A stretch of DNA of 64,000 nucleotides from IMGVR_UViG_3300023174_000042:208577-272576; one strand, 5' to 3'; shown: positions 1,979-59,361, counted from the first letter of the stretch. Made by a program: numbers and translations. Notes: a model not told the origin generated them from the sequence alone.

Positions 1979-2728
1979 TTAAATAACTTCTCTTGTGTCA
2001 ATATGTGCCTCATACATTAATCTTCTTGTTGATAAAGATCTGTAATAATAATAGTCTTCCAAAATAGACTCAAACAAACCGCTCACAAATCCTGATGCCG
2101 CATCCCAAGCATTTGAAAGTCCTTTCCCAACTGCCTGTGCCCCGCTTTGAATAGCGCTTCCTACCGCTTGAGCTCCTTTTTTAATTCCTTGTCCTACAGC
2201 TTGAACACCACCTTTAACAAAGTTGTATGCTTTATTCAACATGTTTCCTGCAAATTGTTTTACGTAAGACCAAAGTTCAGCAATTTTTGAGGCGGCGATA
2301 ACTGCGGCCCCCCAAGCGGCTTGTCCTAATTTCCATATGGCATCAAACATAGATTTAAAAAATTGTAATATGTTTGTAGATGCTTTACTGATAAAACTAG
2401 AAATTTGATTTGCGGTATATTTAATGGTTTGAGCGGCACCAATTACTATACCTTTAACTTGTTTTGCAAGTGCGGTTAAAAAACTCAAAATAACATTTCC
2501 AATTGCCTGTGCCACTTTAAAAGTAGCCTGACCAAGTTTAATTCCAACAATTGCAGGAAGAAAAATGATTGTCAATGAAATTTGACCAATTTTAATTACC
2601 GTTTGTTTGACAGCTTTACCAGCCTGAAAGCCAGCTTTGAATGCCGCGCTTTGGACATTTTGTTCTGAAATAACTTGTTTGATAACTTTTATCAAATCAT
2701 TTTCAGTTAATTTTATTACCTTTTTCAT
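1979..2728 (-). CDS. leader-bearing Ala/Gly-rich amphipathic helical protein
   Basis: N-term MKKVIKLTENDLIKVIKQVISE; GAQAVG repeats; TATTTAT upstream. Confidence 0.8.
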   Translation of the reverse strand: MKKVIKLTENDLIKVIKQVISEQNVQSAAFKAGFQAGKAVKQTVIKIGQISLTIIFLPAIVGIKLGQATFKVAQAIGNVILSFLTALAKQVKGIVIGAAQTIKYTANQISSFISKASTNILQFFKSMFDAIWKLGQAAWGAAVIAASKIAELWSYVKQFAGNMLNKAYNFVKGGVQAVGQGIKKGAQAVGSAIQSGAQAVGKGLSNAWDAASGFVSGLFESILEDYYYYRSLSTRRLMYEAHIDTREVI

Positions 2729-2784
2729 AACTTTTTTTATTTATAAATACATCGTAAGTTGAAAAAATTTTGCAAAAGAAAAAA

Positions 2785-3240
2785 TCATCGACAATGGTAA
2801 TCTGCAGCTCTTGTTGCGATTTGATTATCAGGTTTTATATTTGCCTTATAACCCAATGACGTAACCAATCCAACGGCAGGAGATACGAGTTTTGAACTAA
2901 AATGTTTTTCTTGTGAATTATAGTCCAAATCGATCTCAATTTTTACACTTATTTTACTTGACAACCAATTTGCGACCTCAACAGAATGTTCACATTCAGT
3001 CCAAAGACGTGTCCATTTATCTTTTATTTTTCTTACCTTTTGTTTATGATAAATGTAATGAACACCCCTGTTTCCAAATCTATATGCAATTGCTGTTACA
3101 TATACAGTATTTCTTCTGTGATTTTGTGAATCAGTTCCTATATGGATTTCTACATATGGACATTCTTTTAAAATATCAATTGTATGATTTACTATATCAA
3201 AAACAGCGTCTCCTTCTACTTTTTTAAATACCCTGTTCAT
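2785..3240 (-). CDS. RNase H-like YkuK family protein
   Basis: IHIGTDSQ motif, RLWxE, C-terminal AADY. Confidence 0.75.
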   Translation of the reverse strand: MNRVFKKVEGDAVFDIVNHTIDILKECPYVEIHIGTDSQNHRRNTVYVTAIAYRFGNRGVHYIYHKQKVRKIKDKWTRLWTECEHSVEVANWLSSKISVKIEIDLDYNSQEKHFSSKLVSPAVGLVTSLGYKANIKPDNQIATRAADYHCR

Positions 3241-3341
3241 AAATTGATTTGGGTGAGAAAATTCAAAATTTTATTATAATTTCTGTTGTATGAAATATTT
3301 GACTATCGATCACTCCTTTTATAAATAGTATTAACAAAATA

Positions 3342-3950
3342 CTAATAAACAAAATCAACAAAAAAATAAAAAATTCCATTGTCATAAAAAACACAAGTTG
3401 CCGCAATTGTGTTTGATTTATATCCTTTATCTAAAAAGTAAGTGTTATGTAATAAAGATCTTTGTGTACATCGGTGCATATATGATTTTTCCCAACACAT
3501 AATCATGTGATCTGCCAATTGTTCATATGTATCCATTTTATATGTCGTATACCCACAATTTTCACTTAGAGTTAATTTAAATCCTTTGTTATTTGTTGGG
3601 TAAACTTCATCTAAAAATAAAAATTGATTATTTTTATCACTCCACCAAGATGATCTATCAACATGAAATAATTTTTTTTGTTTTACATTTTCAAGGGCAT
3701 TTGGTAAAACAATAGTATCATATAAAAGTTCTGACCAAATAAGTTTCATCAACTGATTGTTATTTTCCAACATAGGCCAAGCGGATAAAAGATTTTTACC
3801 ATAACCAGTTGTAGTTATGGTGTCTCTGAAAGCGTTTAACTTGTCGAATAAAACTTTCGATGCGTGTTTAGAATCAAAATTGTTGTAGTCAATATTTTGT
3901 GAAAAAGAAATGTGACCAATAAAAAGAAGGATTGTTAGGATATTTTTCAT
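3342..3950 (-). CDS. secreted protein, possibly CAP/SCP-like
   Basis: Signal peptide; LNAFR...SENC...WEKSYMH pattern. Confidence 0.5.
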   Translation of the reverse strand: MKNILTILLFIGHISFSQNIDYNNFDSKHASKVLFDKLNAFRDTITTTGYGKNLLSAWPMLENNNQLMKLIWSELLYDTIVLPNALENVKQKKLFHVDRSSWWSDKNNQFLFLDEVYPTNNKGFKLTLSENCGYTTYKMDTYEQLADHMIMCWEKSYMHRCTQRSLLHNTYFLDKGYKSNTIAATCVFYDNGIFYFFVDFVY

Positions 3951-5829: not shown

Positions 5830-6963
5830 TTAAAACCTGAATTTTTTTAGTTCTTCATTTAAAAAAATATTAATCTTTTTCTCAATTGAACTTTCTTTGA
5901 TATTTCCATATTTTGCTTTACCTACGACTCTTCGTAAATTAGCAATTCCATAAGGACCACCATTAAGTTTGATTCTATCAAATTCATCTTCTAAACCAAA
6001 AATACCACCAATTTTTGGGGATTCACATCTTAAAGCGATAAATTTATTTTTAAACAAATCAACACCACAGTCTCTTGCTGTGTCTGAAGTTATACAATTA
6101 TAAAGTTTTTTGATCGTTGTTCTACAGGTTTTTTTATCAGGATATAATATTTCATTCATAGGATAAATTACATCATTATCTCTTCCAACACCAGCTTGAG
6201 AGGTTAAAGCTGGCCAATCATTTTTAATGTCTTTGAAATAAAACGAATATTTATTTTCATCCGACTCCGGATTTTCAGGTTCAGTAGTTGTAAAGTTTTG
6301 TTTTGTTAACATGGATTCAATCTGATCCATTTTACCTTGTGTTGTTTGTTTTAAACCAACTTTTCTCCACAAATATCCAGGTCCAGTATAATTAGGTAAA
6401 ATAGGTTGTCCAGTACTTGTGTTTTTCAAATCTTTATATAATACTTCTTCGTATTGACTTGGATTTTTTGGATCAAACCTGACATAAACTCCGCCAGAAT
6501 TATCAACAAATTCTTGTAATGTTGCCTCATCTTTTGGACCTAATGATGCAATTCCTAAATTCTCAAGTGCCTTTAATTGTTCACATTGACTTCCTAACCC
6601 ATTAGGAACCCTACTTGCAGGCTTATCATATGTTATTCTATAGGATAGAAGTGCTGTTTGAGGTGCTTTATCATCTTTAACACCAAATACCATATAATAA
6701 TCACCTTGACCTCCTGTTGGTTGACTTGATATATAAAAGGCACTTTCTAAACCTTTACTTTGTAATTCTGGAAAATAACTCCAATATTTTTTTTCTAATT
6801 CTTTGATTGGTCTGTTTTTTAAAAAATCTAAAAAAGAACAATTGTCTCGAACACCTTCTAACATTCTTTTTTGATCGTTATAGTCTAGACCTTTAACGGT
6901 TTTGTTTTTTTGAAGTTCATCGTCTTCTAATAAAACTTTTCGAATAATTTTTGAAATTTCCAT
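5830..6963 (-). CDS. leader-bearing hypothetical protein
   Basis: MEISKIIRKVLLE leader; leader-like tail IKESSIEKKINIFLNEE. Confidence 0.75.
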   Translation of the reverse strand: MEISKIIRKVLLEDDELQKNKTVKGLDYNDQKRMLEGVRDNCSFLDFLKNRPIKELEKKYWSYFPELQSKGLESAFYISSQPTGGQGDYYMVFGVKDDKAPQTALLSYRITYDKPASRVPNGLGSQCEQLKALENLGIASLGPKDEATLQEFVDNSGGVYVRFDPKNPSQYEEVLYKDLKNTSTGQPILPNYTGPGYLWRKVGLKQTTQGKMDQIESMLTKQNFTTTEPENPESDENKYSFYFKDIKNDWPALTSQAGVGRDNDVIYPMNEILYPDKKTCRTTIKKLYNCITSDTARDCGVDLFKNKFIALRCESPKIGGIFGLEDEFDRIKLNGGPYGIANLRRVVGKAKYGNIKESSIEKKINIFLNEELKKFRF

Positions 6964-6966: not shown

Positions 6967-8085
6967 TTATAATTCTGCTAATGTTGACCCCAAACCTGAC
7001 CTACAAATATATTTTATGTCGTCTTTGGTAAAAGATATTTGATTTATTTTTTTTGATAATGCGGTTTCCGTTTCTTTATTGAATAACCCTGTTACTTTAA
7101 CACCCAAACAAGATTGTGCTTTAGATATTAAATCTTCAGACCCTTTTGGTGTTTTACACCCAATATAATATTCTTTTGTGCAATCTCTATAAACATTACC
7201 GTCTTCATCGGTTATTTGTGTTGGATCATCATCACTTGATCCTTTTTTTACACAATCATTTTTTTCAACACTAAACTCATAACCTTCTTGTTCACATTCT
7301 ATTTTGGTATTTCCTTTTTTCTTGAAAAAAAGATACCAAACCCCAACACCAATACCTGTTAAAAGTGCTAATTTGATAAGTGCTTTGGCTTTAATAACTC
7401 TTTTAACAGGATCCCAAATGCCTCGTCTTTCTAACCAATCTAAAACTTTATTTGGTTTTTTATCTATTTCTTTTTTCAAGTCAATAATCTCTTCTTTAGT
7501 TGGTGGAACTTCTTCTATGGGTTTTGGTTCAGGTTTTGGTTCAGGTTTTGGTAAATCACGTTCACCTTTCCAAGTATCCAAGTCTTTTAGTCGTCTTTCA
7601 TTTGCATCAAAAATGGCCTTTAATTGTTCATCGGGAAGCTTTGGATTTTTTTGTTTTAATTTTAAAAACCTATCACCACTAGTCCCAAAAGAATAATTAT
7701 CTTTAAATGTTTTTGTATCAACAATGTCTTCAGCAATTGCCGAAATTAATTTTTTATTTTTTGTATTGGTGTATACACTCCACTTTACTTTCATTCGTTC
7801 GGCGTTGGATAATTTACCATCTTTAAGTGCTCCTATAATTTCATCAATACTTTTGAGACTTTTTCCGTCTTTAGTCATTACACCACCAAATTTTAGAAGT
7901 TGTTTCTCAACTGATTGTAGTTCGGTTCTAAATTCTCTTGCTAATTCGGCATCTCCACGTAAAGCATCAATCAATCCTCTTACTTGTTCGGATATAATTG
8001 TAAAATTTTCTTTGGATGTTTTTGATAAATCATATCCACTTAAAAATTTAATCCTGTTAATTTCCTCTATTATAATATTTTTCAT
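6967..8085 (-). CDS. leader-bearing membrane protein with PKPE repeats and C-terminal peptidoglycan-binding-like module
   Basis: EEINRIKFL..IISE leader, TM segment, AQSCLGVKVTGLFNKETE. Confidence 0.75.
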   Translation of the reverse strand: MKNIIIEEINRIKFLSGYDLSKTSKENFTIISEQVRGLIDALRGDAELAREFRTELQSVEKQLLKFGGVMTKDGKSLKSIDEIIGALKDGKLSNAERMKVKWSVYTNTKNKKLISAIAEDIVDTKTFKDNYSFGTSGDRFLKLKQKNPKLPDEQLKAIFDANERRLKDLDTWKGERDLPKPEPKPEPKPIEEVPPTKEEIIDLKKEIDKKPNKVLDWLERRGIWDPVKRVIKAKALIKLALLTGIGVGVWYLFFKKKGNTKIECEQEGYEFSVEKNDCVKKGSSDDDPTQITDEDGNVYRDCTKEYYIGCKTPKGSEDLISKAQSCLGVKVTGLFNKETETALSKKINQISFTKDDIKYICRSGLGSTLAEL

Positions 8086-10417: not shown

Positions 10418-11011
10418 TTAATTGTATTTTTTAAATCTTTTAAACATGTCTAAAGATTCGTTTAATTTTGAAATAAAGTCAGGTAATATTTCTTCATCAA
10501 TATTTGAATACATTTCTGAATCATCAAATTCTTCTTCTTCGGTCTCTTCAAGTTCTTTTGACATGTCTTCCGAAGAATAATCTTCTAACTGGTCAATATC
10601 GTATTCGTATTGATCTTCGTTGTTGTCTAATTCATCTGTCATATTACCAAAAGAAATGTATTCTTCTTCATTCTCATTTGGTGACGGATAGATATCGTGC
10701 ATAAATTGAGTATTTCTGTTGTCAGTATCTTCATAACTATCAATATCTACCGTTCCATTTTTTAAATCCATAGGGCCATCACCAATACGATCTAATGGTT
10801 GTTCGTTAATTCTAAAATTTGTGTAGTTTCCAATAGTTCCATCATTTTTTAATGAAATTCCATTTTTATCATTTGCCAAATCCTGAACATATAAAGGATA
10901 TTGATTACTTTGTTGGTTATATTTTGTAACATACCCATCATAAACATGTTTATGTTGGTCTAAAATATTTTCTTTTTCTTGTTTATTCATTTTGAAAAAA
11001 TATGCATTCAT
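10418..11011 (-). CDS. acidic protein with EKENILDQH-type leader
   Basis: Start reassigned to 11011 after TATTTAT; INE/LNES sites. Confidence 0.7.
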   Translation of the reverse strand: MNAYFFKMNKQEKENILDQHKHVYDGYVTKYNQQSNQYPLYVQDLANDKNGISLKNDGTIGNYTNFRINEQPLDRIGDGPMDLKNGTVDIDSYEDTDNRNTQFMHDIYPSPNENEEEYISFGNMTDELDNNEDQYEYDIDQLEDYSSEDMSKELEETEEEEFDDSEMYSNIDEEILPDFISKLNESLDMFKRFKKYN

Positions 11012-11124
11012 AAGTTCTTTTTTTTTTATAAATATCATTTGGTTCAACAAATATTTGAAATATTAATAATTGTTCTATTTTTAATTGAAATAAACTTTGT
11101 TTTGTTTAGATATTTATTATTGAT

Positions 11125-11745
11125 ATGAAAATAATTTTAACTGAGGATCAATATATTTCATTACTTAAAGAAGAAAAAGAAAATGAAATTGAACAAACTT
11201 TTACAAACTCAAAAAAATTTACAAAAAGATTATTAAGGGATGTTAAAAATCAATATGGGATTGATTTTAATTTTGCTTTAACTTGGGGTTCTGTAATCGG
11301 TGGTTTTGTTGGTCCAATATCAAAATACTTAGAAGGAAAATATACAAATCTTTCAAAAACTGATATTACATTAATTTGTTTTGGAATAGTTCTAACTTTT
11401 TTTTCTGAAAACAAAGAAAAATTACACAAAGTATTAGAATTAATAAAGGAAAACAAATTAATTACTTTTTTTGATCATGCTTTAATGAAAGCTTACGATT
11501 TAAAAGATGCGTTTTTTAATTTTTTGGAGTCTTTAAATATGACATTTTCAAAAGTTTCAAATATGGTCGCTTATACTTTTTTGGTCCCTCTGATTCCCTT
11601 ATTAAAAAATTTGGCAGATATGGATTTATCTTCAGATCAAATTCATTTATTGTCGATGGGCGTGTCCCACTATACAGGAACAATAATTTCTTCAAAAATA
11701 ATTACCGAATTAATCAAAAAAATAATTAAAAGATTTAGATCTTAG
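11125..11745 (+). CDS. leader-bearing membrane protein
   Basis: MKIILTEDQYISLLKEE; TATTTAT upstream. Confidence 0.75.
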   Translation: MKIILTEDQYISLLKEEKENEIEQTFTNSKKFTKRLLRDVKNQYGIDFNFALTWGSVIGGFVGPISKYLEGKYTNLSKTDITLICFGIVLTFFSENKEKLHKVLELIKENKLITFFDHALMKAYDLKDAFFNFLESLNMTFSKVSNMVAYTFLVPLIPLLKNLADMDLSSDQIHLLSMGVSHYTGTIISSKIITELIKKIIKRFRS

Positions 11746-19492: not shown

Positions 19493-20020
19493 TTATCTAC
19501 CTAATCTTGTGTCTCTATCTACTCGTCCTTTAAGCGCTAATAGTAATCCTGCAAATACCATTGCTGCGGATACTGGACCACCACCCATTTTGTCAACATA
19601 ATCATGAACTTGGATCATAAGTTCACCAGCGTCAGTATATCCCATTGCTTGACTAATCATACCCAAAGCACCGGCTCCCATCATACCTAATCCACCTCTC
19701 ATCATTGCTTTTTCTTTGAATGATTTCATTCTGTCTGAAATATCCTCTCTTAGAAACATTTCAGTTAAACCTTCAACTTCTTGATTGCTAACAATATCTT
19801 CCAAATCTTCAATTTCTTCGTCATCCAATCTTCTTAATTTCTTTTCGAAAAAGTCAGCAATTGTGTTTACTACTTCAGATTTATCCATTTTACTGTAATC
19901 ACTTTCATTATCCATTTCGTGATCATCAGATTCCATGCCCATTTCATTTTGAGTTTCGATAATAATTCTTTTGATTAAAGAATGAAACTCTGATTCTGTA
20001 AGTCTAATTTTTCTTCCCAT
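19493..20020 (-). CDS. leader-bearing protein with Gly-rich hydrophobic C-terminal hairpin
   Basis: MGRKIRLTESEFHSLIKRIIIE. Confidence 0.75.
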   Translation of the reverse strand: MGRKIRLTESEFHSLIKRIIIETQNEMGMESDDHEMDNESDYSKMDKSEVVNTIADFFEKKLRRLDDEEIEDLEDIVSNQEVEGLTEMFLREDISDRMKSFKEKAMMRGGLGMMGAGALGMISQAMGYTDAGELMIQVHDYVDKMGGGPVSAAMVFAGLLLALKGRVDRDTRLGR

Positions 20021-20972: not shown

Positions 20973-21464
20973 TTATAATAAATCATTAAGATTTTTCCAT
21001 TTTTTACATTTACTTTTTTTGGGAATCATGGCCACAATGATAATGATTAAAATAAAAATTCCAATCGCAATTAAAATTCCAGGAGAGACCGCAATTGTTC
21101 CTATCATAATTGCCTCAGTTAGTTGTTCTTTTACTTCTTCCTTTTTCTGAGATTTTTTTAATGATAAAAAGGCATCCTTAACTTTTTTGAATGTTTCTTT
21201 CAATTTTGTTTTATTTTGTGGGTCATGAGCCCAATCCCAAATTTTGGATAAAATTGTGTCATGTTCTTGATTTCCGGTTTTTGGAGGAGAGCAAATAGGA
21301 TTGGATTTATCCAAAACATTTTTAACTTCAACATTCAAACCTTCCAAATTTGACAAATTTTGTATTTTACTTAAATCCGATGCTTGATCTATTTTTGTTT
21401 CCTCTTCATTTAACAAACCCATCATTTGTCTAATTGTATTTATTTCATTTAATAAATTATTCAT
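20973..21464 (-). CDS. leader-bearing C-terminal TM protein
   Basis: MNNLLNEINTIRQMMGLLNEE. Confidence 0.75.
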   Translation of the reverse strand: MNNLLNEINTIRQMMGLLNEEETKIDQASDLSKIQNLSNLEGLNVEVKNVLDKSNPICSPPKTGNQEHDTILSKIWDWAHDPQNKTKLKETFKKVKDAFLSLKKSQKKEEVKEQLTEAIMIGTIAVSPGILIAIGIFILIIIIVAMIPKKSKCKKWKNLNDLL

Positions 21465-24506: not shown

Positions 24507-24665
24507 TTATGAATTATTTGATTTATCATATATAATCCAAAAAACCCAATATAAAATTTGATAACAACCAATTAAATTAATTATTTGTTTTGGCAAATAT
24601 ATAAAAGAAACAATTGTTAAAACAATTACAAAAAATATATATAAAAACTTTTTTAAAATCACCAT
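24507..24665 (-). CDS. small membrane protein (52 aa)
   Basis: MVILKKFLYIFFVIV..; start overlaps upstream stop. Confidence 0.45.
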   Translation of the reverse strand: MVILKKFLYIFFVIVLTIVSFIYLPKQIINLIGCYQILYWVFWIIYDKSNNS

Positions 24666-25069
24666 TTAATTCTTTTATTTTTTTTGACATTAAAATTGTA
24701 TTTGACTAACACAGGATTTCCTATAAGATCGGATTTTTTCTCATAAAAAAATTCAACACAATCAATATTAAGTTTTGTTTTTTCATTAACATAAGATAAA
24801 ATGGTTCTTGAAAACATTTTTTTTCTTGTGATAGCTTTTGATATAAAACTTTCAATTTCATCTAAGATGTCTGTAGAAACATACATATCTTTTTTGCAAC
24901 CTGGCATTCTTCCCGCTTTAGTATAAACTGTAAAAATATCCTCACCATCCTTTGATATTATATGAATTATACTATCCTTTTTTTTATATGAAATGTTTGG
25001 TCCATAAAAATTATCTAATAATTTAAAAACCACTTTTTTATATTGATCTTCTGTAACAATAATTTTCAT
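24659..25069 (-). CDS. leader-bearing hypothetical protein
   Basis: MKIIVTEDQY; start reassigned. Confidence 0.75.
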   Translation of the reverse strand: MKIIVTEDQYKKVVFKLLDNFYGPNISYKKKDSIIHIISKDGEDIFTVYTKAGRMPGCKKDMYVSTDILDEIESFISKAITRKKMFSRTILSYVNEKTKLNIDCVEFFYEKKSDLIGNPVLVKYNFNVKKNKRIKW

Positions 25070-25070: not shown

Positions 25071-25394
25071 TTAATCTTTTGACATTTGTTTAACAAAATA
25101 AACATCTCGAATCGGATACCAAAACTTATTTTGAATCCAAATTTTAATAACTTCTTTTGCTTTTTCTTCATCCAAGTCTGAGGTCATATCTATTAATTCA
25201 TCAACATACTTTTTAAAAAAATAAACATCTTCACTTCTTTCACTATAAGTAAAAATTCTAATATCCCCAATATAATATAGTTTATAACCTCTTTCAGATT
25301 TTTCTTTATTTAATTCAATACCTTTAAGTATTAAATCCAAACTCTTCAAGTAGAATAACAGATTTAGTTGCGATTCTGAAATAATAATTTTCAT
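25071..25394 (-). CDS. leader-bearing hypothetical protein
   Basis: MKIIISESQL. Confidence 0.75.
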   Translation of the reverse strand: MKIIISESQLNLLFYLKSLDLILKGIELNKEKSERGYKLYYIGDIRIFTYSERSEDVYFFKKYVDELIDMTSDLDEEKAKEVIKIWIQNKFWYPIRDVYFVKQMSKD

Positions 25395-27129: not shown

Positions 27130-27471
27130 TTATATTTTTGATGTTATTGTCGAATAAACTTTATCAACCACTCTATGATCTCCACTCACTGTACCATTTA
27201 CTCCAGGTTTACCGTATCTGAACACTCCTCTTAGATTCGATGGATTTTTAATATCAAAATGATAATATTGTACATAACTAGCATTTGGGTCTTTACCTTT
27301 TTGTAGCATTTCGTTTCCATCGGGATCTGTAGAATATTTAAACCCTTTAGGTTCATAATGGTTTCTTAATTTTTTCCAAACGCAATCAGCGTCGCATCCC
27401 ATTTCTTCATTAATAACTCGTCTTACAATTCGAGCCAAGTCTGATTCTGTTAATCTTATAATTCTTTTCAT
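27130..27471 (-). CDS. leader-bearing cassette protein
   Basis: MKRIIRLTESDLARIVRRVINEEM; start reassigned. Confidence 0.8.
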   Translation of the reverse strand: MKRIIRLTESDLARIVRRVINEEMGCDADCVWKKLRNHYEPKGFKYSTDPDGNEMLQKGKDPNASYVQYYHFDIKNPSNLRGVFRYGKPGVNGTVSGDHRVVDKVYSTITSKI

Positions 27472-27575: not shown

Positions 27576-28034
27576 TTATAAATATCTTTCTCTTAGAGTT
27601 TCTCTAACAATTCTTTTAATTAAAGATTCATCAATCACACTTTCACCTTTTCTTTTTTCATCATAACCATAGACAGTTGTATAAACACTGAATGGTAGAT
27701 CCTCCAAATACTCAAGATAAAAATCATCTCTAAGTTCTTGAATATACCAAATGTCGTTATCATAACCACTATCGGCCCAAACAGGATAATAGTCCTCACC
27801 ATTTTTTGTTATAGAATCAATAATAGTATCTATATCACCAACGGCATCTATTCCTTCACCAATAACACTTCTAACGACAATATGAAATTTAAATTCATAG
27901 ATGATATCACCAAGAACATAGTTATATCCATCATAAACATCTTCAGTATCTGTGAGCGTCATTTCAAACTCCTTGTTTTCAAAGAGTTTCTTTAATAAAT
28001 TTTTTAGTTTTTTATTTCCAATATTTATTTTCAT
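27576..28034 (-). CDS. acidic protein with leader-like motif at C terminus
   Basis: Ends IDESLIKRIVRETLRE. Confidence 0.7.
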   Translation of the reverse strand: MKINIGNKKLKNLLKKLFENKEFEMTLTDTEDVYDGYNYVLGDIIYEFKFHIVVRSVIGEGIDAVGDIDTIIDSITKNGEDYYPVWADSGYDNDIWYIQELRDDFYLEYLEDLPFSVYTTVYGYDEKRKGESVIDESLIKRIVRETLRERYL

Positions 28035-28363
28035 GGATCAACAAAATTAAACACCCAAACTGCGGTCCATTTACCATCTTTCTTTGGGAATAATGACTCA
28101 AACATCTCATCAATATCATTTGTTATGGGTGAGTTATCTGATTCTCCATCATGAAATGATTGTTCATGATCATTTGTTTTAATATTAAACCTATACAACG
28201 GAACCTTATATGATTTCGGATGTCTAAACATAAATGGTTCAACTTTAACACCATCGATTCCTTCATACCAAGGATATTCAGATAGAATATAATCAATATA
28301 TTTTTCAAATACTTTGATCTTTCTAAGAGACTCCGCTTGATCTTCAGTTATAATGATTTTCAT
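28031..28363 (-). CDS. leader-bearing hypothetical protein
   Basis: MKIIITEDQ. Confidence 0.75.
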   Translation of the reverse strand: MKIIITEDQAESLRKIKVFEKYIDYILSEYPWYEGIDGVKVEPFMFRHPKSYKVPLYRFNIKTNDHEQSFHDGESDNSPITNDIDEMFESLFPKKDGKWTAVWVFNFVDP

Positions 28364-34030: not shown

Positions 34031-34594
34031 TTAACTATCACGATCAAAATGATTTTTTATTTTTTGATAAGTTTTAGGAGAAAGAACCCATGAAATATTT
34101 TCCACCACATCTTCGGGTAACTCTTCTTCCATTTTATTATTTATTTCAGTATTTAAATAAGCCTTTATTCCATCAATAGAAAACCATTTAATATCGTCTT
34201 CATTAAAGTTTGATGTCATTCCGTATAAAACATCTATTTTTTGATTTTTAGGTAAGTTTTCCACATTCGGTAAATCGATATATTCTGATGTTAAATTTTC
34301 AATTAATTTATTAACTTCATCACATCTAACTTTTTTTACGTTACAATATTTTAGAATTTTTGATACTTCATCTTCATCAAGATCAAATGGATACTTATAT
34401 TTTTTTGATACATTTGTTCCATACTTTTGATCAAATTCTAATGCTGGTTTGCTATTAACATCAATCCAAGTTTCTTCATCCCAACTTGGTAAATCATCTT
34501 TTTTTGTTTTAAATAGATTTGAAACAAAATCAAAAATTCCTTCATTTAATCCCATTAACTCTCGGGTCCTTTTTAATTCTTCATTTAAATTCAT
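34031..34594 (-). CDS. leader-bearing hypothetical protein
   Basis: MNLNEELKRTRELMGLNE; start reassigned. Confidence 0.75.
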   Translation of the reverse strand: MNLNEELKRTRELMGLNEGIFDFVSNLFKTKKDDLPSWDEETWIDVNSKPALEFDQKYGTNVSKKYKYPFDLDEDEVSKILKYCNVKKVRCDEVNKLIENLTSEYIDLPNVENLPKNQKIDVLYGMTSNFNEDDIKWFSIDGIKAYLNTEINNKMEEELPEDVVENISWVLSPKTYQKIKNHFDRDS

Positions 34595-37600: not shown

Positions 37601-37679
37601 TACCATTATCTTCAATAACTTGTTTCAACTCTTGTTGGAGTCTATTTTCTTTTAAGATATGTCTAATCAGTTCTCTCAT
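34623..37679 (-). CDS. leader-bearing modular polyprotein (~8 modules joined by I/L-x-E linkers), includes ART-fold-like module
   Basis: MRELIRHILKE; linkers SLNES, FLNEN, VLNEN, LVES, LMES, VINES, NINES. Confidence 0.8.
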   Translation of the reverse strand: MRELIRHILKENRLQQELKQVIEDNGIFDAIDMVGGLKNLKKAFKNDPEFSEILDDLTGVVDFSVYDYFRDPKPIVFPLQYEIINIRKNISETNSWPELNLIYDEDKLSPSENETLKSIIAVIQNDNTTGKIKTKTLNFKDSNYFDIKQINGKDVDIHEDEYSFSKKDVIRIHNKLYGESESLNESSNKSEKDLKKLLKITKMIMEDLILPEYNHIICSYEITLNEVFNIPEVTVLFIGGYGTKLWPMTQGIRNMYIEVLDDISKEIATYTGVVIGVRGEQTSNCNEEENSFLNENKLEEKNKNFIKNKLGIDFDGKIELVQSAWDLPWQTFNFISNDWLNRFMNNHGPCYLMKINKEYILYNPLYITGNGDEGLVIDSEDGLNYTDREYTEKIKIDHTGISLKTIVDLFFNEENSDEVLNENEDYSPAGKEVKPNQIVVHKSNPKFRDKIMENGLKVRAGECYKIYVGYGVKCKPAIFATNSTNKRAWFDSTYDDDIWFIDTTKIPDVKWFKDRHFESRSKHIVTFQDIPKEAITLKYEGTGSSEDILNSWPEDSPNRRTLREDSELVESESKFEHNDFSKYEKLLNDMVYSVVDKELLCGIEIDSFFDSKYSEKPSLRLILKYKKNKFRPFTFHETRTEIKKMIKDFFPIVDNLYLAYDTTKCQKIDDLMESENKSEDKKLKLVKEMIYNLFDEVEFIEVDTNYQGKPLIKVFHDVEDTAANYDNWFTHKIIDEIMELTGDGVILSPWWGYGWDWKYKNADLYIDVQKIKYDDEGNVINESDESKQERKFNKLIQNVEDYLNSNEYLSVKKFMLYYDEQFDDVIVNIFFDPVESVKLGGGINSVIKKVGKQVMEDLDIFPLNFKYHIHFDKNINESDNKKQSLQKIIEKDGLYNFIEMSGLDFNQVKSILNKIDNPKKIIKQYIREYVLEHDGMSSKNSGSLFGLKIRLSNTKLIYDIMVQDSDQIAVEIWEYYEDNYGQRITKDQYLTTINSLTNEELLSILSWMMETIQIGYWD

Positions 37680-38323
37680 TAATATAATCCTCTTAATCTA
37701 TCATACTCAACGTTACGAAGTTTTTCTAAATATGTTTTTTCAATCCATCCTGGACTTTCTTCTTCTTGTTTCATTATGGCATCTCTTCTAAAAAGTGTGG
37801 TTTTAAGAATAAGTTCTATCATATCCTCCTCAGTCACGCCTTCAGGTTTTGTCATTGGTGGAACACAAGTTTGAGCATCTCTATCATCTATATTAAATTC
37901 AGAAATATGAATGTCATTTCTACCCATCTTACTTTGAATTTCACCTAAATAGGTGTCGTCAAACCATTCTTCAAAAAGGTATTTTAAGTAACTTGCTCTA
38001 ACAGGAATATCAGACATCAACTCTTTAAATATATCATTTGGAATATAAATTGAACCTGATTCAAAATCTCTTTCTTCAGTTTTTCTTCTATCGTCAAAAA
38101 CATCACTATTATCTTCAAAAAATAATATAAATTTCATTATTTCTTTTCCATGATTACACCATTCAAAATCATGTCTTGTTTCCCACGATTTGTCATGATA
38201 CATTTTTGCACCATCAAAATAGTTGTTTAACCACCTATAAACAAGTTGTTCTACCTTTGGTGTAGGTTTAGAATATTTTCTAGTAACCTCATCTTCTAAT
38301 ATTAATTTAATTAAATTTCTCAT
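37679..38323 (-). CDS. leader-bearing hypothetical protein
   Basis: MRNLIKLILE. Confidence 0.75.
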   Translation of the reverse strand: MRNLIKLILEDEVTRKYSKPTPKVEQLVYRWLNNYFDGAKMYHDKSWETRHDFEWCNHGKEIMKFILFFEDNSDVFDDRRKTEERDFESGSIYIPNDIFKELMSDIPVRASYLKYLFEEWFDDTYLGEIQSKMGRNDIHISEFNIDDRDAQTCVPPMTKPEGVTEEDMIELILKTTLFRRDAIMKQEEESPGWIEKTYLEKLRNVEYDRLRGLY

Positions 38324-39564: not shown

Positions 39565-41061
39565 CTAACTGATTTGTCTAATAGCACTTTCTACTTTATC
39601 TTGATTTTTTAACTTGGTATTTTTTCTATCTTTGATTGCCAATTCAATTAATTGTTGATCCGATAGTCCGTTTTTGATTCCATTTTCCAAACTTTCAGCA
39701 AATTTTTTGAAAAACCCCGGTCCATTCCAACAAGCATATGACATATGAAGAGTTAAACCTGGTATTGATTGAATTTTTTCTTTAGTTTTTGGATCTTTTA
39801 CAAAATTTGACATATTTTTGTCAAAAGATCTTTTCATTATTTTAACTGCCAAATTTTTCAAAGATTGTTCTTTGTCTCCACCTCGATATAACCATTTCCA
39901 TTCTTTACAAAAGTCATCCATGTTTGACCAAGTGGTATTTGGTCCAACACCATTTGATTTAGCCCCAGCACCATATTTTTCTCCATCTATAATTTGAAAA
40001 AATTCTTTACCTTCAGGTGATGACTCAATATTTCCGTTATATCTGTCCAATCCAAACATTGTTTCTGTAGATTTTCCCATATTACCACCTGGATGCTTAC
40101 AAAACGGATTCCAATATCCGCCTTCAAACTTATCAATCACAATTTTTGTAACATTTTCAAAATTTGACAAATCAACAGCAGATAAATTGTTTTCATCAGA
40201 TTGACTTTCCTTACATATCTTTTGAACATCAGATACGTTAAATTCTTTTTTTCCTGTTTTTTCTTCCATAGCACTTTGAGTTTTAGGTCCAAAATATCCA
40301 TCTTGATTTATACCCAAGCAACCTTGCACTTGATATATAATTCCATTAGTATTTGGAGATTTATATTTAGTTCCGACATCTTTACAACCTTTTTTAAAAT
40401 TTGGTCCATCACAATCGGAGTATTTTTTTAATTTATCTGATATATCACTAACACTAGAACCACCACCTATAAGTGATATATCGTCACTTGTTTCGATTTC
40501 AGTTGGTTTGTCTGTCCTATTATATTCACCTTTACCTTCATGTGGAGGATAGTTTTTTGGTAAAGAATATTTGTAAAAAAATTGTCTAATATAAACACCA
40601 TCAGGGTTTTTGAAGTCTAATACTAATTTGATGTTTTCTGCGTCTTTTTTTTCTAATTTTCTAGTCAAATCATTTATTTGTCTTTCTGCTCTTATGTCTG
40701 CTCTGTTTCCTGCGGATCCTCGTGTAGAGATTCCCATATAAGCAATTCCATCTTTACTTTCATCAATAGTTGCTTCCCAATTTACAGTATAATTTGTAGA
40801 ATCAACTTTTATATTCAAATTTGTAATGTCGGGATTAATTCCAGCATCGTAAACTTCTTTTAATTTTTCATTTATTTTTGTTGACATTTTTCCTCCAAAA
40901 CCATCTGATTTTCTACTTTCAAATGAATGTAATGCGTCCGCATCTCCTTTTGGTGCTGTATAACCACCTTTAACAACAATAGGTAATGAAATTGTTTGTT
41001 CTTTTAACAGTCCCATTATTGATTTAATTCTAAAAATTTCTTCGTTAATATAAGGTTTCAT
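39565..41061 (-). CDS. leader-bearing multidomain protein: peptidoglycan-binding-like module plus lysozyme-fold (GH108-like) domain
   Basis: VQGCLGINQDGYFGPKT; IDKFEGGY..ETMFGLD. Confidence 0.65.
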   Translation of the reverse strand: MKPYINEEIFRIKSIMGLLKEQTISLPIVVKGGYTAPKGDADALHSFESRKSDGFGGKMSTKINEKLKEVYDAGINPDITNLNIKVDSTNYTVNWEATIDESKDGIAYMGISTRGSAGNRADIRAERQINDLTRKLEKKDAENIKLVLDFKNPDGVYIRQFFYKYSLPKNYPPHEGKGEYNRTDKPTEIETSDDISLIGGGSSVSDISDKLKKYSDCDGPNFKKGCKDVGTKYKSPNTNGIIYQVQGCLGINQDGYFGPKTQSAMEEKTGKKEFNVSDVQKICKESQSDENNLSAVDLSNFENVTKIVIDKFEGGYWNPFCKHPGGNMGKSTETMFGLDRYNGNIESSPEGKEFFQIIDGEKYGAGAKSNGVGPNTTWSNMDDFCKEWKWLYRGGDKEQSLKNLAVKIMKRSFDKNMSNFVKDPKTKEKIQSIPGLTLHMSYACWNGPGFFKKFAESLENGIKNGLSDQQLIELAIKDRKNTKLKNQDKVESAIRQIS

Positions 41062-47536: not shown

Positions 47537-48185
47537 ATTTATTATTATAATAAGTTGCAATCCAATCAGCCTTCAGTAAAGGTTCTTGATTTAATATTGT
47601 GTCAATACCGACATAATATTTTTCAGTTTCGTAATAAGTTTCTCTTCGATATAAATAATTGTCTATATATTCTTCAACAGCATCTCCAACATCGGTTTTT
47701 TCCCCATTTAAAGTTGCTGATATTGGTTCTACTTTGTTGTCGATATAGTAAGTTTCACTATCCTCAAAATATAATTTCATACCAACAGATTCTATATTAA
47801 TCACATACTTATTATAACCAATAAATGGAGTTCCTGTTGTAAATTCAATTTTTCTTACAGAGTCAAAAACTTTTTGTATTTTGTTTCTTGTTTTGTTGCT
47901 AAGATAAAATTTAGGTAAATCATTCCACATAACTTCAACAAAAAACTCATAACTAACAAATTGTCCATATTCAATAACAATATCATCTAATAGTTCTTCA
48001 ATGATTGAATAATAATAAGAAACTTTATTTGGGTTTTTAATTACGAATTGAATTGGATAAAAACTTTTATTATTTTTTTTTGTTTCTTCTCCAACTCTAA
48101 CAGGGATACATTTTAACCCGTAAAGATCTATTTCATCTCCAGCAAAGTTTTTAAATAATTTTAATATTTTTTCTTGATTCATCAC
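47526..48185 (-). CDS. hypothetical protein
   Basis: 219-aa ORF. Confidence 0.7.
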   Translation of the reverse strand: MMNQEKILKLFKNFAGDEIDLYGLKCIPVRVGEETKKNNKSFYPIQFVIKNPNKVSYYYSIIEELLDDIVIEYGQFVSYEFFVEVMWNDLPKFYLSNKTRNKIQKVFDSVRKIEFTTGTPFIGYNKYVINIESVGMKLYFEDSETYYIDNKVEPISATLNGEKTDVGDAVEEYIDNYLYRRETYYETEKYYVGIDTILNQEPLLKADWIATYYNNKFIL

Positions 48186-49099
48186 GCAAACATTTTGTAT
48201 TCTCTTTCTCGTCTTGGTTTTAATCCAGGATAGTTATCAAATAAATTTTCACTAGTAACCAATATTTCTTTTTTTGCACCCTCAATGTCCCCTTTTTTTA
48301 GAAGTTGGATAAAATTTGATGTTCTTATTCCAGGACCCATATTAAATGTTATTGACACCATTGCGTCATACATACCTTGAGTTATCTGTGGTTTTATTCC
48401 TTTTTCTTCCCAATCATCAAGTATTTTATTAATTATATTTTCAGCTTTTTCAATATCATCTTTTAACAAAATCTCTGCCTGATCTTTTGTGATTTTTGTT
48501 TTACCTGAAATTATTTTGTTATAGTTTGGAAGAAAATCATATCCTTCTTTTTCTTTTTTGAATACAGCATGTCCATATCCGATTGTTTTTGCCTTATCCC
48601 CCAAATTATAAGCAACTAAAACTGGCTCACCTTTGTGTTTTAATGAACCTTCTTCCCATTTTAAATGATTATATAAGTCTTTTGAAGATTTTCTAATTTT
48701 TAGATCTTGTATTGGTTTTGTTAAAACTTCTTTTTCAAATTTTATTGCTTTTTCTACTGGAGGGTCAAGATAATTTTTTATTTGACCAACACTTAAAAGT
48801 CCGACCAGTGAAAATATGACATACTGAAATATTTTTCTTTTAACTTTGGATGGTAGATTTTTTATTTTATTAGATAGGGTATTTAAAAATTCTTTCGCAT
48901 CTTCTTTTGTTTTAACCCAATTTTTTGATTTGTCAATATCTTTTTTAACATCAGTAAAATCCCACTCCATATCAGGTTCAGTTTTACCATCATCTTCAGA
49001 AATTAAAGACAATTTGAAAACAAGATCATCAAGAACTTGTTCATAAATTAATTTAGATTGTATTGAGATATATTGATCTTCGGTTATTAAAACTTTCAT
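48182..49099 (-). CDS. leader-bearing phage lysozyme (GH24-like) with TM segment
   Basis: WEEG..AY..D..TIGYGH, YDAMVSITFNMG, GLKPRREREY. Confidence 0.85.
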   Translation of the reverse strand: MKVLITEDQYISIQSKLIYEQVLDDLVFKLSLISEDDGKTEPDMEWDFTDVKKDIDKSKNWVKTKEDAKEFLNTLSNKIKNLPSKVKRKIFQYVIFSLVGLLSVGQIKNYLDPPVEKAIKFEKEVLTKPIQDLKIRKSSKDLYNHLKWEEGSLKHKGEPVLVAYNLGDKAKTIGYGHAVFKKEKEGYDFLPNYNKIISGKTKITKDQAEILLKDDIEKAENIINKILDDWEEKGIKPQITQGMYDAMVSITFNMGPGIRTSNFIQLLKKGDIEGAKKEILVTSENLFDNYPGLKPRREREYKMFA

Positions 49100-53520: not shown

Positions 53521-54102
53521 ATGTTAAATATTATTGCAGTAACTTATAACCATAAAGAATCCTTGAAGTGTTTTATCAATTCAATAAAAAATCAAACTAA
53601 TAATAATTGGACACTTTTTATTATTCACGACGGATTAAACCACACCCTTAAAGAAGAATTAACTAATGAAAATTATTTAAACGATAAAGTAATTTTTATT
53701 GAGCATCCAGTAAGAACTCAAAATTATGGTCATATACTTCGTAAGTGGTCTTTGGAAAATTTGAATCTAAATGGTAGAGTATTATTAACTAATGCAGATA
53801 ATTATTATACGCCAAATTTAGTTGATGAAGTTCTTAGCTATAGTGAAGATTTTATTTATTTCAATGTGATTCATTCTCATAAAAATAAAACCAATCATAA
53901 TAAATCAAACTATGGTTTTATGAACACAAAATTAGAACAAAGTAAAATAGATATGGGTTGTGTTGTGGTAAAATCTGAAATAGCAAAAAAAGTAGGTTTT
54001 AATTCGACTTCTTATGAAGCCGATTGGCATTATTTCGATGAAATATTAAAAACTAACCCGAGTATTTTAAAAATTGATAAAGTTTTATTTGTCCATAATT
54101 AA
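53521..54102 (+). CDS. glycosyltransferase family 2
   Basis: AVTYN, IIHDG, NADNYY, IDMG, ADW. Confidence 0.8.
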   Translation: MLNIIAVTYNHKESLKCFINSIKNQTNNNWTLFIIHDGLNHTLKEELTNENYLNDKVIFIEHPVRTQNYGHILRKWSLENLNLNGRVLLTNADNYYTPNLVDEVLSYSEDFIYFNVIHSHKNKTNHNKSNYGFMNTKLEQSKIDMGCVVVKSEIAKKVGFNSTSYEADWHYFDEILKTNPSILKIDKVLFVHN

Positions 54103-54416
54103 TTAGACTTATTTTTTTTCTTTCTCCCCTGACAATGCGCTCTCTGACTAAATCCTTTTGGGTTATTACAGTTGATTGATCTTTTATATTTTTCAGACCA
54201 CTTTTCTTCAATCGGTTCTTTAGATAATTTATTCTTCCAAAACTTGAATAGGTTTTCTTTATCATATTTACCCTTTTTTTGATCCCACCCACAATCATGG
54301 CAAAGAAAAGAATGTTTGTCATCATTCTCTTTTTTCCAAGAGTGTTCACACTTTTCACATTCAATCTTTTCGTTGAATATTCTATCTGCCTGTTTTTCTG
54401 AAATTAGTATTTTCAT
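54099..54416 (-). CDS. leader-bearing zinc-ribbon protein with C-terminal basic Cys peptide
   Basis: MKILISEKQ; CEKC..CHDC; IEE-KWSEKYKRSINCNNPKGFSQRAHC. Confidence 0.75.
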   Translation of the reverse strand: MKILISEKQADRIFNEKIECEKCEHSWKKENDDKHSFLCHDCGWDQKKGKYDKENLFKFWKNKLSKEPIEEKWSEKYKRSINCNNPKGFSQRAHCQGRKKKNKSN

Positions 54417-57779: not shown

Positions 57780-57906
57780 AATGTTCTTGTAATAGTCTAT
57801 TTATTAATGCAGATTTATTGGTAAGATCTTTTTCTAATTTTTCATAAATCTCTATATTGAGAGTTATTGAGATTTTCTTTTTTGTAATTTTACCTTTTGT
57901 CTTCAT
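57760..57906 (-). CDS. small ribbon-helix-helix-like protein (48 aa, below ORF-track cutoff)
   Basis: MKTKGKITKKKISITLNIEIYEKLEKDLTNKSALINRLLQEHY; overlaps HNH start; TATTTAT upstream. Confidence 0.65.
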   Translation of the reverse strand: MKTKGKITKKKISITLNIEIYEKLEKDLTNKSALINRLLQEHYGNKKM

Positions 57907-58032
57907 ATATTATAAATATCTACTAGTTATGTAAAAATCATACTTTACATACTTTTTTAATTAATAATTGATAATTTTTATTATTATATTATTATAAAAT
58001 ATAAACTATTTATTTCAAAAAAGAAATTAATA

Positions 58033-58863
58033 ATGGACCCTACAAAAATTCTTTTACTTGTAAAATATACTAAACAAATTCACAAATCTTTAAAGGATTT
58101 TTCAAATTCTGATATTTTTAATACTATTGCAGACATCAGAAATAAAATCTATAATGATGAGTTCTTGAGTTTATATCTTTCTAAATTAAATGGTTCTGAG
58201 GAATTATACTTGTTTTTTTCAATTTATCTTTATCATAAAAATGGTGACGCTGCAAAATCAGTAAAGTATGTTTTAGAAAATTTAAAAGGATATTTTTTTT
58301 CAGAATTTGAAAATGATGGATATAAATTAGAAGAGTGTGGAAATTGCTATGGTTACGGAAGAGAAGATTGTGACTATTGCGATGGATCAGGAACTGAAGA
58401 ATGTAGAGAATGTAGTGGTGAAGGAGTTGTTACTTGTGATGACTGTGGTGGTTCAGGTGAAGATGAAGATGGACAAAGATGCGAAACTTGTAATGGAGAT
58501 AGTCACGTAACTTGTGAAGATTGCCAAGGTCGTGGTTCTTCTACATGTAATAGTTGTGGTGGTGATGGTCATTTTGAATGTAATGATTGTAATGGTTCAG
58601 GCGAAGTAGAAACTGACGAACTATTAGTTAATGAAGTAAATTCTTCAGTTTACACACTAAATAATTTGGACTTAATTTTTGATGAAGGTGAATTGATAAA
58701 TGAAAAAGTCTATGAAACTAGAGTCTTAATACAGCCTTATTTTAGAATAGCAAAATGGTCAGGTGATTATACAGTTGATGAAATTGAATATGAATTTGAT
58801 TTAGAAAATTTGGACTTTTCAAATGGTTATCTTGTTTTATATAACGGAAGATTACCTGTTTAA
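58033..58863 (+). CDS. protein with eight DnaJ-type CxxCxGx(G) zinc-finger repeats, no J domain
   Basis: CGNCYGYG, CDYCDGSG, CRECSGEG etc. Confidence 0.8.
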   Translation: MDPTKILLLVKYTKQIHKSLKDFSNSDIFNTIADIRNKIYNDEFLSLYLSKLNGSEELYLFFSIYLYHKNGDAAKSVKYVLENLKGYFFSEFENDGYKLEECGNCYGYGREDCDYCDGSGTEECRECSGEGVVTCDDCGGSGEDEDGQRCETCNGDSHVTCEDCQGRGSSTCNSCGGDGHFECNDCNGSGEVETDELLVNEVNSSVYTLNNLDLIFDEGELINEKVYETRVLIQPYFRIAKWSGDYTVDEIEYEFDLENLDFSNGYLVLYNGRLPV

Positions 58864-59361
58864 AAACTTCAACTTATACATTGTTGAATAGATCAATTCT
58901 TGAATTCCATCAATTTGATTTTGAATGTAAGTATCTTCACAACAATCTCTTTTTTCTTCTATTGTGTTTAATAAACTTGTAAAGTATTTTAAAACTTGAT
59001 TTTTGTTTTTATAAGTTTGATTTTTATATGACTTATAATTTTTTAAAAGTCCGTATTTTCCTTGAAAAGATTCAATTAAACTATCAACAAGCTCATCAAT
59101 TCCTTCATAGTATTTTTGAAGAGATTTGTGTTCTGCATATGAATTTGTTCCTAAATGGAAAATATGAACTTGTGTTTGTGAATGTAATAATTGACAAACC
59201 ATTTCACAAAAATCTTCGTTATGACTTGAAGAAGTTTGATCTTCATTTTCATCAGTATCATCGTTTTCTTTTTGGTCATCATCGTCATCTTCTTCTTGTT
59301 CCCAAAGATTTCTTCTTTTTAATTCTTCTTTTAGTTTTTCTGTCAAATCAAACTTATTCAT
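58852..59361 (-). CDS. leader-bearing ferritin/Dps-like protein (DUF5856-like)
   Basis: HIFHL.T.SYAEHKSL..YY..D.LIE.FQG, YKLKFL. Confidence 0.75.
   Translation of the reverse strand: MNKFDLTEKLKEELKRRNLWEQEEDDDDDQKENDDTDENEDQTSSSHNEDFCEMVCQLLHSQTQVHIFHLGTNSYAEHKSLQKYYEGIDELVDSLIESFQGKYGLLKNYKSYKNQTYKNKNQVLKYFTSLLNTIEEKRDCCEDTYIQNQIDGIQELIYSTMYKLKFLNR

Follow-up and report, generated by a model that had tools for sequence, protein, structure and literature searches.

The window analysed here, a stretch of 64,000 nucleotides, is the final 64 kb of the 272,576-bp viral contig IMGVR_UViG_3300023174_000042 (window position 1 corresponds to approximately contig position 208,577, in the same orientation). 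It belongs to an uncultured T4-like jumbo phage that infects Bacteroidetes and has a genome of 272.6 kb. Between positions 1979 and 55895 of the window, 38 open reading frames (ORFs) carry short, related N-terminal leaders of 7-35 residues on unrelated bodies. We consider it probable that these leaders are capsid-targeting propeptides in a head-assembly system homologous to that of phage T4, leaving a large and fast-changing protein cargo in the head. More tentatively, and as a proposal that falls somewhat short of probable, the lineage, which is abundant and known only from metagenomes, may use interchangeable address peptides of multiple classes to load dozens of hypervariable proteins per genome, and thousands of families lineage-wide, into the capsid.

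Leaders shared by unrelated proteins

The leaders were sorted into classes by consensus. Class A, MK[RK][IV][IV]RLTESDLARIV[KR]RVIxE, is found on eight genes and in one B+A hybrid. Class B, MKIIITE[DSN]Q, is found on about ten genes, class C/D, M(NLQEQ/KEL)I[RK]xΦΦxE (Φ, hydrophobic residue), on about 14, class E, ..IxRIKxLMGL..E, on about five, and class F, EKxRILxxH, on three. Hybrid leaders of the B+A, B+F and C+E types are also present, and two further classes, G (RFKQLLESxMGNVKPLxxE) and H (SKIRHIQE...), occur outside the window. Together the leader ORFs sum to 8,728 residues of the approximately 19,000 in called genes, about 46% of the coding capacity of the window. Leader genes are found outside positions 1979-59361 as well, both upstream of the window and beside the capsid gene.

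In an all-versus-all BLASTP comparison, nearly all pairwise matches are limited to residues 1-30 (the first 22-30). Among the few exceptions are 26556/27130, which are true paralogs, and 28841-29260, the body of which is 37% identical to residues 293-415 of the 1018-residue protein encoded at 34623-37679 (E = 1e-22). It is noted that in this last pair one body domain occurs under different leaders, B+A in the shorter protein and class D in the longer one. Within the first 25 residues the core motif was observed 17 times against 0.07 expected from shuffled sequences, and the class B motif eight times against 0.01; both patterns were written post hoc, after the data had been seen, and the excess is very large nonetheless. 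The ΦΦxE sequence lies within the first 25 residues in 32 of 37 leader genes versus four of 56 non-leader genes, a comparison that involves some circularity where classes A, C and D are concerned.

The first-pass annotation had described about 40 unrelated ORFs with shared N-terminal leaders, in agreement with the 38 counted here, a number far above chance. Its description of the leaders as mostly ending in I/L/V-x-E is borne out as well, since every class ends in hydrophobic-x-Glu, and the N-termini of the guaC, thyA, slyD-like, uvrC-like, umuC and glycosyltransferase ORFs are free of leaders, as it had stated. Some of its gene calls needed revision: the real start of ORF 24659-25171 is the internal ATG at 25066, which gives a class B leader, and 58852-59361 is not convincing as a leader gene. 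The individual genes are listed below with window coordinates, strand, leader class and protein length in residues.

1979..2728 (-), class A, 249 residues; body with weak tape-measure-like PHROG hits
5830..6963 (-), class D, 377 residues; third gene of the unit led by 8093-9289
6967..8085 (-), class B/E-like, 372 residues
8093..9289 (-), class B+F, 398 residues; ATATTTAT upstream
10418..11038 (-), weak class F-like, 206 residues; least convincing of the set
11125..11745 (+), class B, 206 residues
13370..13957 (-), class D-like, weak, 195 residues
14012..14542 (+), class A-like, 176 residues; A or B+A leaders on orthologous bodies elsewhere
19493..20020 (-), class A, 175 residues
20074..20925 (-), class F, 283 residues; weak OmpA-like peptidoglycan-binding domain
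20973..21464 (-), class E, 163 residues
21487..21825 (-), class C/E-like, 112 residues
23064..23924 (-), class B, 286 residues; terminator-like hairpin and TATTTAT in front
24659..25066 (-), class B; starts at the internal ATG of ORF 24659-25171
25071..25394 (-), class B, 107 residues
25576..25881 (-), class A, 101 residues; in the tandem A array missing from relative L093
26060..26488 (-), class A, 142 residues
26556..26954 (-), class A, 132 residues
26968..26975 (-), one of the ATATTTAT copies; the ATG of 26556-26954 follows 20 nt further on
27130..27471 (-), class A, 113 residues; recent duplicate of the 26556 cassette, promoter included
27576..28034 (-), 152 residues; C-terminal leader-like core (residues 138-145), none N-terminal
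28031..28363 (-), class B, 110 residues
28360..28755 (-), class D, 131 residues
28841..29260 (-), class B+A hybrid, 139 residues; body homologous to part of 34623-37679
29334..29765 (-), class A, 143 residues; AlphaFold model with confident body and detached low-confidence leader helix
31454..32329 (-), class C, 291 residues
32331..32768 (-), class C+E, 145 residues
32770..33366 (-), class C, 198 residues; first of a three-gene unit with ATATTTAT
34031..34594 (-), class C+E, 187 residues
34623..37679 (-), class D, 1018 residues; largest candidate cargo, without a Pfam or PHROG family
37679..38323 (-), class D, 214 residues
38320..38757 (-), class D, 145 residues
38741..39079 (-), class D, 112 residues
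39079..39513 (-), class D, 144 residues; first of a five-gene D-leader unit with TATTTAT
39565..41061 (-), class E, 498 residues
42613..44202 (-), class D, 529 residues, weak DHH-like; leader varies among orthologs
48182..49099 (-), class B, 305 residues; C-terminal GH24 phage lysozyme domain
54099..54416 (-), class B, 105 residues
54413..54709 (-), class B, 98 residues
55029..55895 (-), class E, 288 residues

Selection on the leader peptide and its spread among viruses

Among 88 distinct class A leader DNAs, the proportion of synonymous differences (pS) is 0.54, which is near saturation (unrelated sequence would give about 0.63), and the proportion of nonsynonymous differences (pN) is 0.12. 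The pN/pS ratio is 0.22 in codons 2-22 and approximately 1.0 from codon 23 onward, and the Leu, Arg and Ser residues of the leader are encoded from different codon boxes. Because the synonymous sites are near saturation while the amino acids are kept, selection acts on the leader peptide and not on the DNA or RNA, and the constraint ends exactly after Glu22. This Glu22 is invariant and Ile20 is at least 90% conserved, with position 21, the x of I-x-E, being the sole free position inside the leader. The polar residues Thr8, Glu9, Ser10, Asp11, Arg14 and Glu22 are conserved as strongly as the hydrophobic positions. Classes B, C/D, E, F, G and H likewise end in Φ-x-E.

A class A profile of 30 columns (A1) was scored against 1.84 billion representative proteins and matched 9,551 clusters (50% identity) at E ≤0.001 and 967 at E ≤1e-10. 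When 147 class A proteins were aligned, the mean column identity outside the leader was only 5%. The Pfam scan of these 147 metagenomic proteins gave only single hits, to PG_binding_1, OmpA and GNAT, with no toxin domain detected, and the Pfam and PHROG scans of 30 leader proteins of the window were nearly all empty. The back-translated class A pattern was found in 112 stretches of IMG/VR contigs of 4-292 kb, and of 124 occurrences at the viral loci, 118 have the motif five residues behind the initiator Met. The same pattern gave one match in 185,579 bacterial and archaeal species genomes, an internal one in an unrelated context, which we read as chance. A tblastn search of GenBank phages, T4-like ones among them, with the class A leader (27 residues) and one whole leader protein, the other classes not being searched there, returned nothing relevant. 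An index search with the first 40 residues of the class B lysozyme returned orthologs only and thus gave no class B census. Among 1,049 proteins of related contigs, the ratios of N-terminal to internal hits are 32/0 for class B, 28/3 for class F, 7/1 for class E and 153/13 for the core motif; classes G and H each give 4/0 with the window genes added.

Leaders of different classes replace one another on orthologous bodies. Orthologs of the DHH-like protein 42613-44202 start with a D leader, a B leader or a minimal MxKLIxE, and in every case ΦΦxE adjoins the conserved [ST]GIR with which the body begins. In several further groups of orthologs, D, B and A leaders have been swapped or an E leader has been shortened. 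Among relatives that are approximately 88% identical, leader cassettes have been gained, lost and replaced between conserved flanks, and relative L093, for instance, lacks the tandem class A array found here at about 25.0-28.0 kb. In metagenomic class A proteins an identical body is found either alone or behind another leader-body unit. It should be mentioned that in 27576-28034 a core, LIKRIVRE, lies seven residues from the C-terminus, with another core at residue 53. By analogy with those reported for T4 Alt and gp21, the C-terminal core might be a C-terminal propeptide.

Transcription units of the leader genes

The motif ATATTTAT is present in 43 copies in the window, compared to 19.9 ± 4.1 expected. 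TATTTAT lies within 50 nt upstream of 25 of the 38 leader genes versus 13 of the 56 others (p = 5e-5), and 12 of the 13 leader genes without a TATTTAT of their own are placed no more than 8 nt behind the preceding gene of a TATTTAT-headed unit. In line with the earlier observation that TATTTAT precedes the leader genes heading gene runs, the motif stands at the start of all but one leader-gene unit. In the head-assembly region described below, GATATTTAT is found 11-38 nt upstream of the starts of the terminase, portal, 152-residue, 238-residue, protease and scaffold-like genes. Further copies stand in front of the VanY lysis gene and of several genes on the far side of the capsid gene. The genes with TAnnTTTG promoters form a distinct and mostly non-leader set. 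Based on its position upstream of the head genes and of the leader-gene units, ATATTTAT is probably the late-type promoter of the lineage.

In front of many leader cassettes there is a GC-rich hairpin with a T-run (for example ...GTGGGGTTTTTTGTTTT...) and, directly behind it, ATATTTAT, as observed at 23925-23960, 26489-26520, 29261-29300 and similar intergenic sites. The succession of hairpin, ATATTTAT and leader forms a terminator-promoter-leader cassette boundary. Such a boundary recalls the mobile regulatory cassettes of the hyperplastic regions of T4-type phages.

Head-assembly genes of the same genome

Upstream of the window, at a distance of about 16-31 kb, the phage genome encodes a T4-type head module. 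The upstream region was walked by exact-protein look-ups from the window; the head-module loci are 100% identical to the contig of the window over overlaps of 2.5-10.6 kb, and the capsid gene maps onto that contig itself, in the stretch 170,239-192,143. The gene order is holin, VanY and Pyr_excise, followed by a ClpB-like AAA+ protein, Terminase_6N, a 444-residue protein and Portal_T4. It continues with ORFs of 152, 238 and 155 residues, Peptidase_S77 (242 residues), DUF4494, an acidic protein of 485-507 residues and Gp23 (635 residues).

The protease belongs to PF03420 and matches T4 gp21 (PDB 5JBL) with E = 2e-14 in a phmmer comparison, with the His and Ser residues present at the aligned ELNHP and GISSRG motifs. 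The PHROG assignments of portal, head maturation protease (E = 1e-42) and major head protein agree. The first-pass annotation had tied the targeting reading to a Glu-specific prohead protease and to its co-occurrence with the leaders; a gp21-family Peptidase_S77 and the leaders are both encoded in this genome.

The capsid protein aligns to both gp23 and gp24 of T4. Across the lineage its N-terminus is invariant through L-I-N-E/A (the slash marking the putative cut) and variable thereafter, and by alignment offset this sequence falls within about 15 residues of the Glu65/Ala66 cleavage site of T4 gp23. An H-L-K-E site in the capsid protein matches the T4 gp23 offset even better. The invariant stretch suggests that the S77 protease cuts the capsid protein at L-I-N-E/A. 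The 152-, 238- and 155-residue ORFs and the acidic 485-507-residue ORF have no family match and sit at the positions of T4 genes 67, 68 and 22; a gp22-like scaffold core may be present, as judged from gene order alone.

Two proteins encoded beside the capsid gene bear D leaders throughout the lineage. The first reads ...IIKKVIKE/ATxDSxGxRGSY... and the second ...IIKKVIxE...RYMFFSNLEQM..., the latter having a class A-like leader instead in two relatives, most clearly in L173. In capsid-centred loci, which were not chosen for leaders, leaders are present on 89 of 965 distinct proteins, and 32 of the 39 such loci of at least 12 kb encode at least one leader protein. Relatives of this capsid protein were found on at least 598 viral contigs. 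On another contig, an independent class A gene (P0031) lies less than 10 kb from Terminase_6N, Portal_T4 and Peptidase_S77 genes, and eight of 112 leader-A loci contain a terminase 65-80% identical to that of this phage.

Predicted structure and candidate cargo

The class A protein 29334-29765 was modelled with AlphaFold2 from 13 aligned sequences, ten of them homologs and three of them class A proteins with unrelated bodies. The predicted local distance difference test score (pLDDT) is above 90 for the body from residue 30, 50-58 for leader residues 1-27 and below 50 for residues 18-27. The leader is modelled as a helix (residues 9-23) that is not packed against the body, though it is the most conserved part of the alignment. 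In this model, a detached and conserved leader is what would be expected for a peptide that binds another protein and has an exposed cut site. A Foldseek search of the model against the PDB gave no hit below E = 0.001; the best match, the C-terminal 'double-wing' DNA-binding domain of T4 MotA (E = 0.07, template modelling score 0.39-0.47), was not relied on.

Some leader-tagged bodies act on peptidoglycan and have no signal peptide, namely the GH24 lysozyme 48182-49099 and the OmpA-like protein 20074-20925, and bodies with PG_binding_1 and OmpA domains recur among the metagenomic class A proteins. Peptidoglycan-acting cargo delivered from the virion would fit an ejected role, which we regard as a weak, suggestive indication. 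Leaderless peptidoglycan hydrolases, which are endolysin candidates, are encoded as well, one with PG_binding_1 and Amidase_2 domains at 60706-61590 (-), the other a 433-residue VanY protein (L129:12944-14245), the gene of which is near but does not adjoin a Phage_holin_10 gene.

Proposed mechanism and alternatives

We propose that the leader genes are transcribed late from ATATTTAT promoters, along with the head genes, and that the basic amphipathic leader would dock each protein on the prohead core. Likely docking partners would be the acidic 485-507-residue scaffold-like protein or the small core proteins whose genes lie between those of the portal and the protease. The gp21-family S77 protease would then remove the leader after its terminal hydrophobic-x-Glu, and the freed body would remain in the head and enter the host with the DNA. 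The leader classes could serve as interchangeable labels for one destination, and leader, promoter and terminator may double as a cassette boundary that allows quick exchange of bodies. We infer late timing, docking, cleavage, head retention and injection as the steps of this pathway. The likeness to the T4 capsid targeting sequence (CTS), already pointed out in the first-pass annotation, is supported, each of its predictions open to computational testing having been borne out: the protease, the shared promoter, the Φ-x-E end, the invariant site in the capsid protein, the leader swaps and the detached leader. The first-pass annotation had also proposed looking for leaders on the scaffold and capsid proteins, and neither the scaffold-like nor the capsid protein has a clear one.

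Several observations weigh against capsid targeting. A position matrix of the leader core, applied to ten head-module proteins, found nothing significant on the capsid, portal, protease or small core proteins, and the best leader match of the scaffold-like protein is weak (p ~0.02 before correction for 10 tests). Homology between the leaders and the T4 CTS is not detectable, the likeness being one of length, position and the Φ-Φ-x-E end. Hydrophobic-x-Glu is also found within the first 25 residues of 23 of the 56 non-leader proteins, in a proteome rich in Ile, Leu and Glu. In metagenomic proteins, class A modules can also be internal, repeated or C-terminal, and without Met. The putative cargo is very large, taking up about 46% of the coding capacity of the window and including proteins of 1018 and 529 residues. 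The late timing of ATATTTAT is deduced only from its position upstream of head and lysis genes. A possible other partner for the leaders, a ClpB/AAA_2-type protein of 676-680 residues, is encoded beside the terminase both here and in a leader-A relative. Finally, the evidence is genomic and comes from an uncultured lineage.

The leaders could target the prohead while the bodies are expendable core or scaffold filler, to be degraded and expelled at maturation, an explanation that we regard as improbable. The T4 core proteins gp22, gp67 and gp68 are indeed cut by gp21 and mostly leave the head (PMC9026906), two D-leader proteins conserved in the lineage are encoded inside the head module, and many bodies are acidic and of low complexity. 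However, most bodies are hypervariable, their cassettes turn over between relatives approximately 88% identical and their folds are confident, which suits accessory effectors better than filler. The lysozyme and peptidoglycan-binding bodies also suggest action in the envelope of the next host.

It also appears unlikely that the leaders are tags for another phage or host partner, such as the ClpB-like AAA+ unfoldase, some chaperone or a different site of late assembly. A specific protein partner is implied by the nearly invariant residues on both faces of the leader helix, and the leader is detached from the body. The ClpB-like protein (AAA, AAA_2 and ClpB_D2-small domains; L136:2941-4983), about 25 kb upstream of the window, also adjoins head genes in the leader-A contig L132, and it could be a tag reader or an assembly chaperone. 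However, such a partner leaves unexplained the Φ-x-Glu end common to every class, the stop of conservation at this point and the like site in the capsid protein.

We find it very unlikely that the leaders are generic amphipathic helices by which late proteins bind membranes or oligomerise without processing. The AlphaFold helix at residues 9-23, the pattern of basic and hydrophobic residues, and the glycine-zipper-like hydrophobic segments or tape-measure-like regions of some bodies are compatible with such a role. The conservation of polar positions to the same degree as hydrophobic ones would be unexpected for lipid binding, and quite different leader classes replace each other on one body.

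That the leaders are DNA-level features only, serving as recombination handles or translation-initiation regions of mobile cassettes, is barely tenable, being largely refuted by pS of 0.54 versus pN of 0.12 and by the mixed codon boxes for Leu, Arg and Ser, in spite of the terminator/promoter/leader structure, the near-identity of duplicated upstream regions, the gain, loss and replacement of cassettes between relatives and the occurrence of one body alone or behind another leader-body unit; recombination at the leaders is probably a by-product and not their function. Two other candidates were rejected. The leaders are not Sec, Tat or type IX secretion system signals, as they are charged helices and real signal peptides and CHU_C domains are found on other genes, and they are not ribbon-helix-helix DNA-binding motifs, with 22 conserved residues only and the second helix absent.

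Comparison with known packaging systems

For capsid targeting, the closest comparison is the CTS of the T4 internal proteins IPI, IPII and IPIII. In T4, gp21 cleaves behind L/I-x-E, and for packaging the first 10 residues of IPIII are enough (PMC9026906). The internal proteins of T-even phages are diverse, with the CTS as their only common part (PMC3012670), and the CTS has already been proposed in the T4 literature as a route by which T4-like phages load varied proteins (PMC9026906; PMC3012670). In both systems a short N-terminal peptide ending in hydrophobic-x-Glu is placed on otherwise unrelated, fast-evolving proteins, and the genes of a gp20-type portal, a gp21-type S77 protease and a gp23-type capsid protein follow a T4-like order. 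In both, the fold of the body does not depend on the leader; late-type expression, as in T4, is suggested for the present phage by the promoter motif. The leaders would then be an analogue of the T4 CTS within a homologous head-assembly machine. The two systems differ in scale: there are at least 7-8 leader classes of 7-35 residues here, compared to a single one of about 10 residues in T4, and 38 tagged genes in 64 kb, with bodies of up to 1018 residues, compared to three internal proteins. The module found here can be internal, repeated or C-terminal, whereas the reported T4 equivalent is limited to C-terminal propeptides. The host here is a member of the Bacteroidetes, and the present system is known from sequence alone.

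The giant phages phiKZ, 201phi2-1 and SPN3US have dozens of head-internal proteins with propeptides that are cut after Glu by a diverged gp21 homologue, and phiKZ-like giant phages eject a large cargo of proteins into the host (PMC9026906). Cleavage in these phages follows S/A-x-E, in contrast to the I/L/V-x-E of the leaders described here, and the propeptides do not form a small set of near-invariant, interchangeable leaders. The protease of the present phage is much closer to T4 gp21 (direct phmmer comparison, E = 2e-14).

In the Dar system of phage P1, accessory anti-defence proteins are packaged in the capsid and injected (PMC9024508; PMC12810830). The Dar proteins are a small fixed set with hierarchical loading, have no common short consensus leader and belong to a different head-assembly family. 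N-terminal regions of these proteins reportedly direct their loading into the head. Cargo-loading peptides of encapsulins and encapsulation peptides of bacterial microcompartments are short amphipathic helices, detached from the fold of the cargo, that suffice as a shell address; the resemblance is by analogy only. These are cellular compartments, which usually keep their peptides and are not connected with a maturation protease. Polymorphic toxin and effector systems likewise combine a constant address with a hypervariable payload that is swapped as a cassette at the junction. Unlike in these systems, the constant part here is only 10-35 residues long, is carried by a lytic phage and is tied to head genes rather than to a secretion system.

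A literature search for the leader strings and for capsid targeting in T4-like phages of Bacteroidetes found no description of the leaders. While the CTS and internal proteins of T4 and the ejection-protein propeptides of giant phages are already known, what is new is the scale, together with the several classes of interchangeable leader, their organisation in cassettes, a host among the Bacteroidetes and the spread across metagenomes. If the capsid-targeting reading is correct, this would be by far the largest known repertoire of virion-delivered phage effectors, and the purpose of nearly half of a 64-kb accessory region would be explained. The leader alone would yield a catalogue of candidate anti-defence and host-takeover proteins, with a 22-residue profile flagging at least 9,500 clusters of proteins that are probably delivered from the virion and are the first to meet host defences. 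Almost all of the flagged proteins are unannotated and would thus be rich ground for anti-defence functions. The CTS principle of T4 would then be a scalable strategy of interchangeable labels and cassette exchange of cargo, and no T-even curiosity, and the leaders would provide natural packaging tags for engineering Bacteroidetes phages.

Host and genome context

The host almost certainly belongs to the Bacteroidetes, as indicated by the CHU_C/SprB protein 15893-18340 together with the TAnnTTTG promoter elements before many non-leader genes. The former, encoded on the (-) strand, has 815 residues with a Sec signal peptide, SprB repeats, a PKD domain and a CHU_C type IX secretion signal; during infection it probably reaches the host surface by export. 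Several small genes (3342-3950, 5013-5777 and 9614-10117) combine signal peptides of the Bacteroidetes type with TAnnTTTG promoters. No Shine-Dalgarno sequences were found for the genes of the window, which has a guanine plus cytosine content of approximately 28%. A megablast search with 24 kb of the window against GenBank phages gave no match and hence no close DNA relative. At the protein level, the uncultured "huge phages" LR745206 and LR756502, of 634-642 kb, encode relatives of the weakly DHH-like 42613-44202 with 40-44% identity.

At the start of the window, 272-4974 holds a cluster of six genes for tRNAs (Asp, Glu, Met, Ile, Phe and Ser). In the head module, a gene for a ribosomal protein S21-like protein (PF01165; L136:16201-16455, (-) strand) lies antisense between the 238- and 155-residue ORFs and is conserved in L132, L133 and L135. 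Between two leader genes, 41094-42548 (-) encodes a 484-residue homing/HNH endonuclease (PHROG 3339, E = 3e-100). This gene is missing from L002 and L003, relatives of approximately 88% identity, and is therefore a recent mobile insertion.

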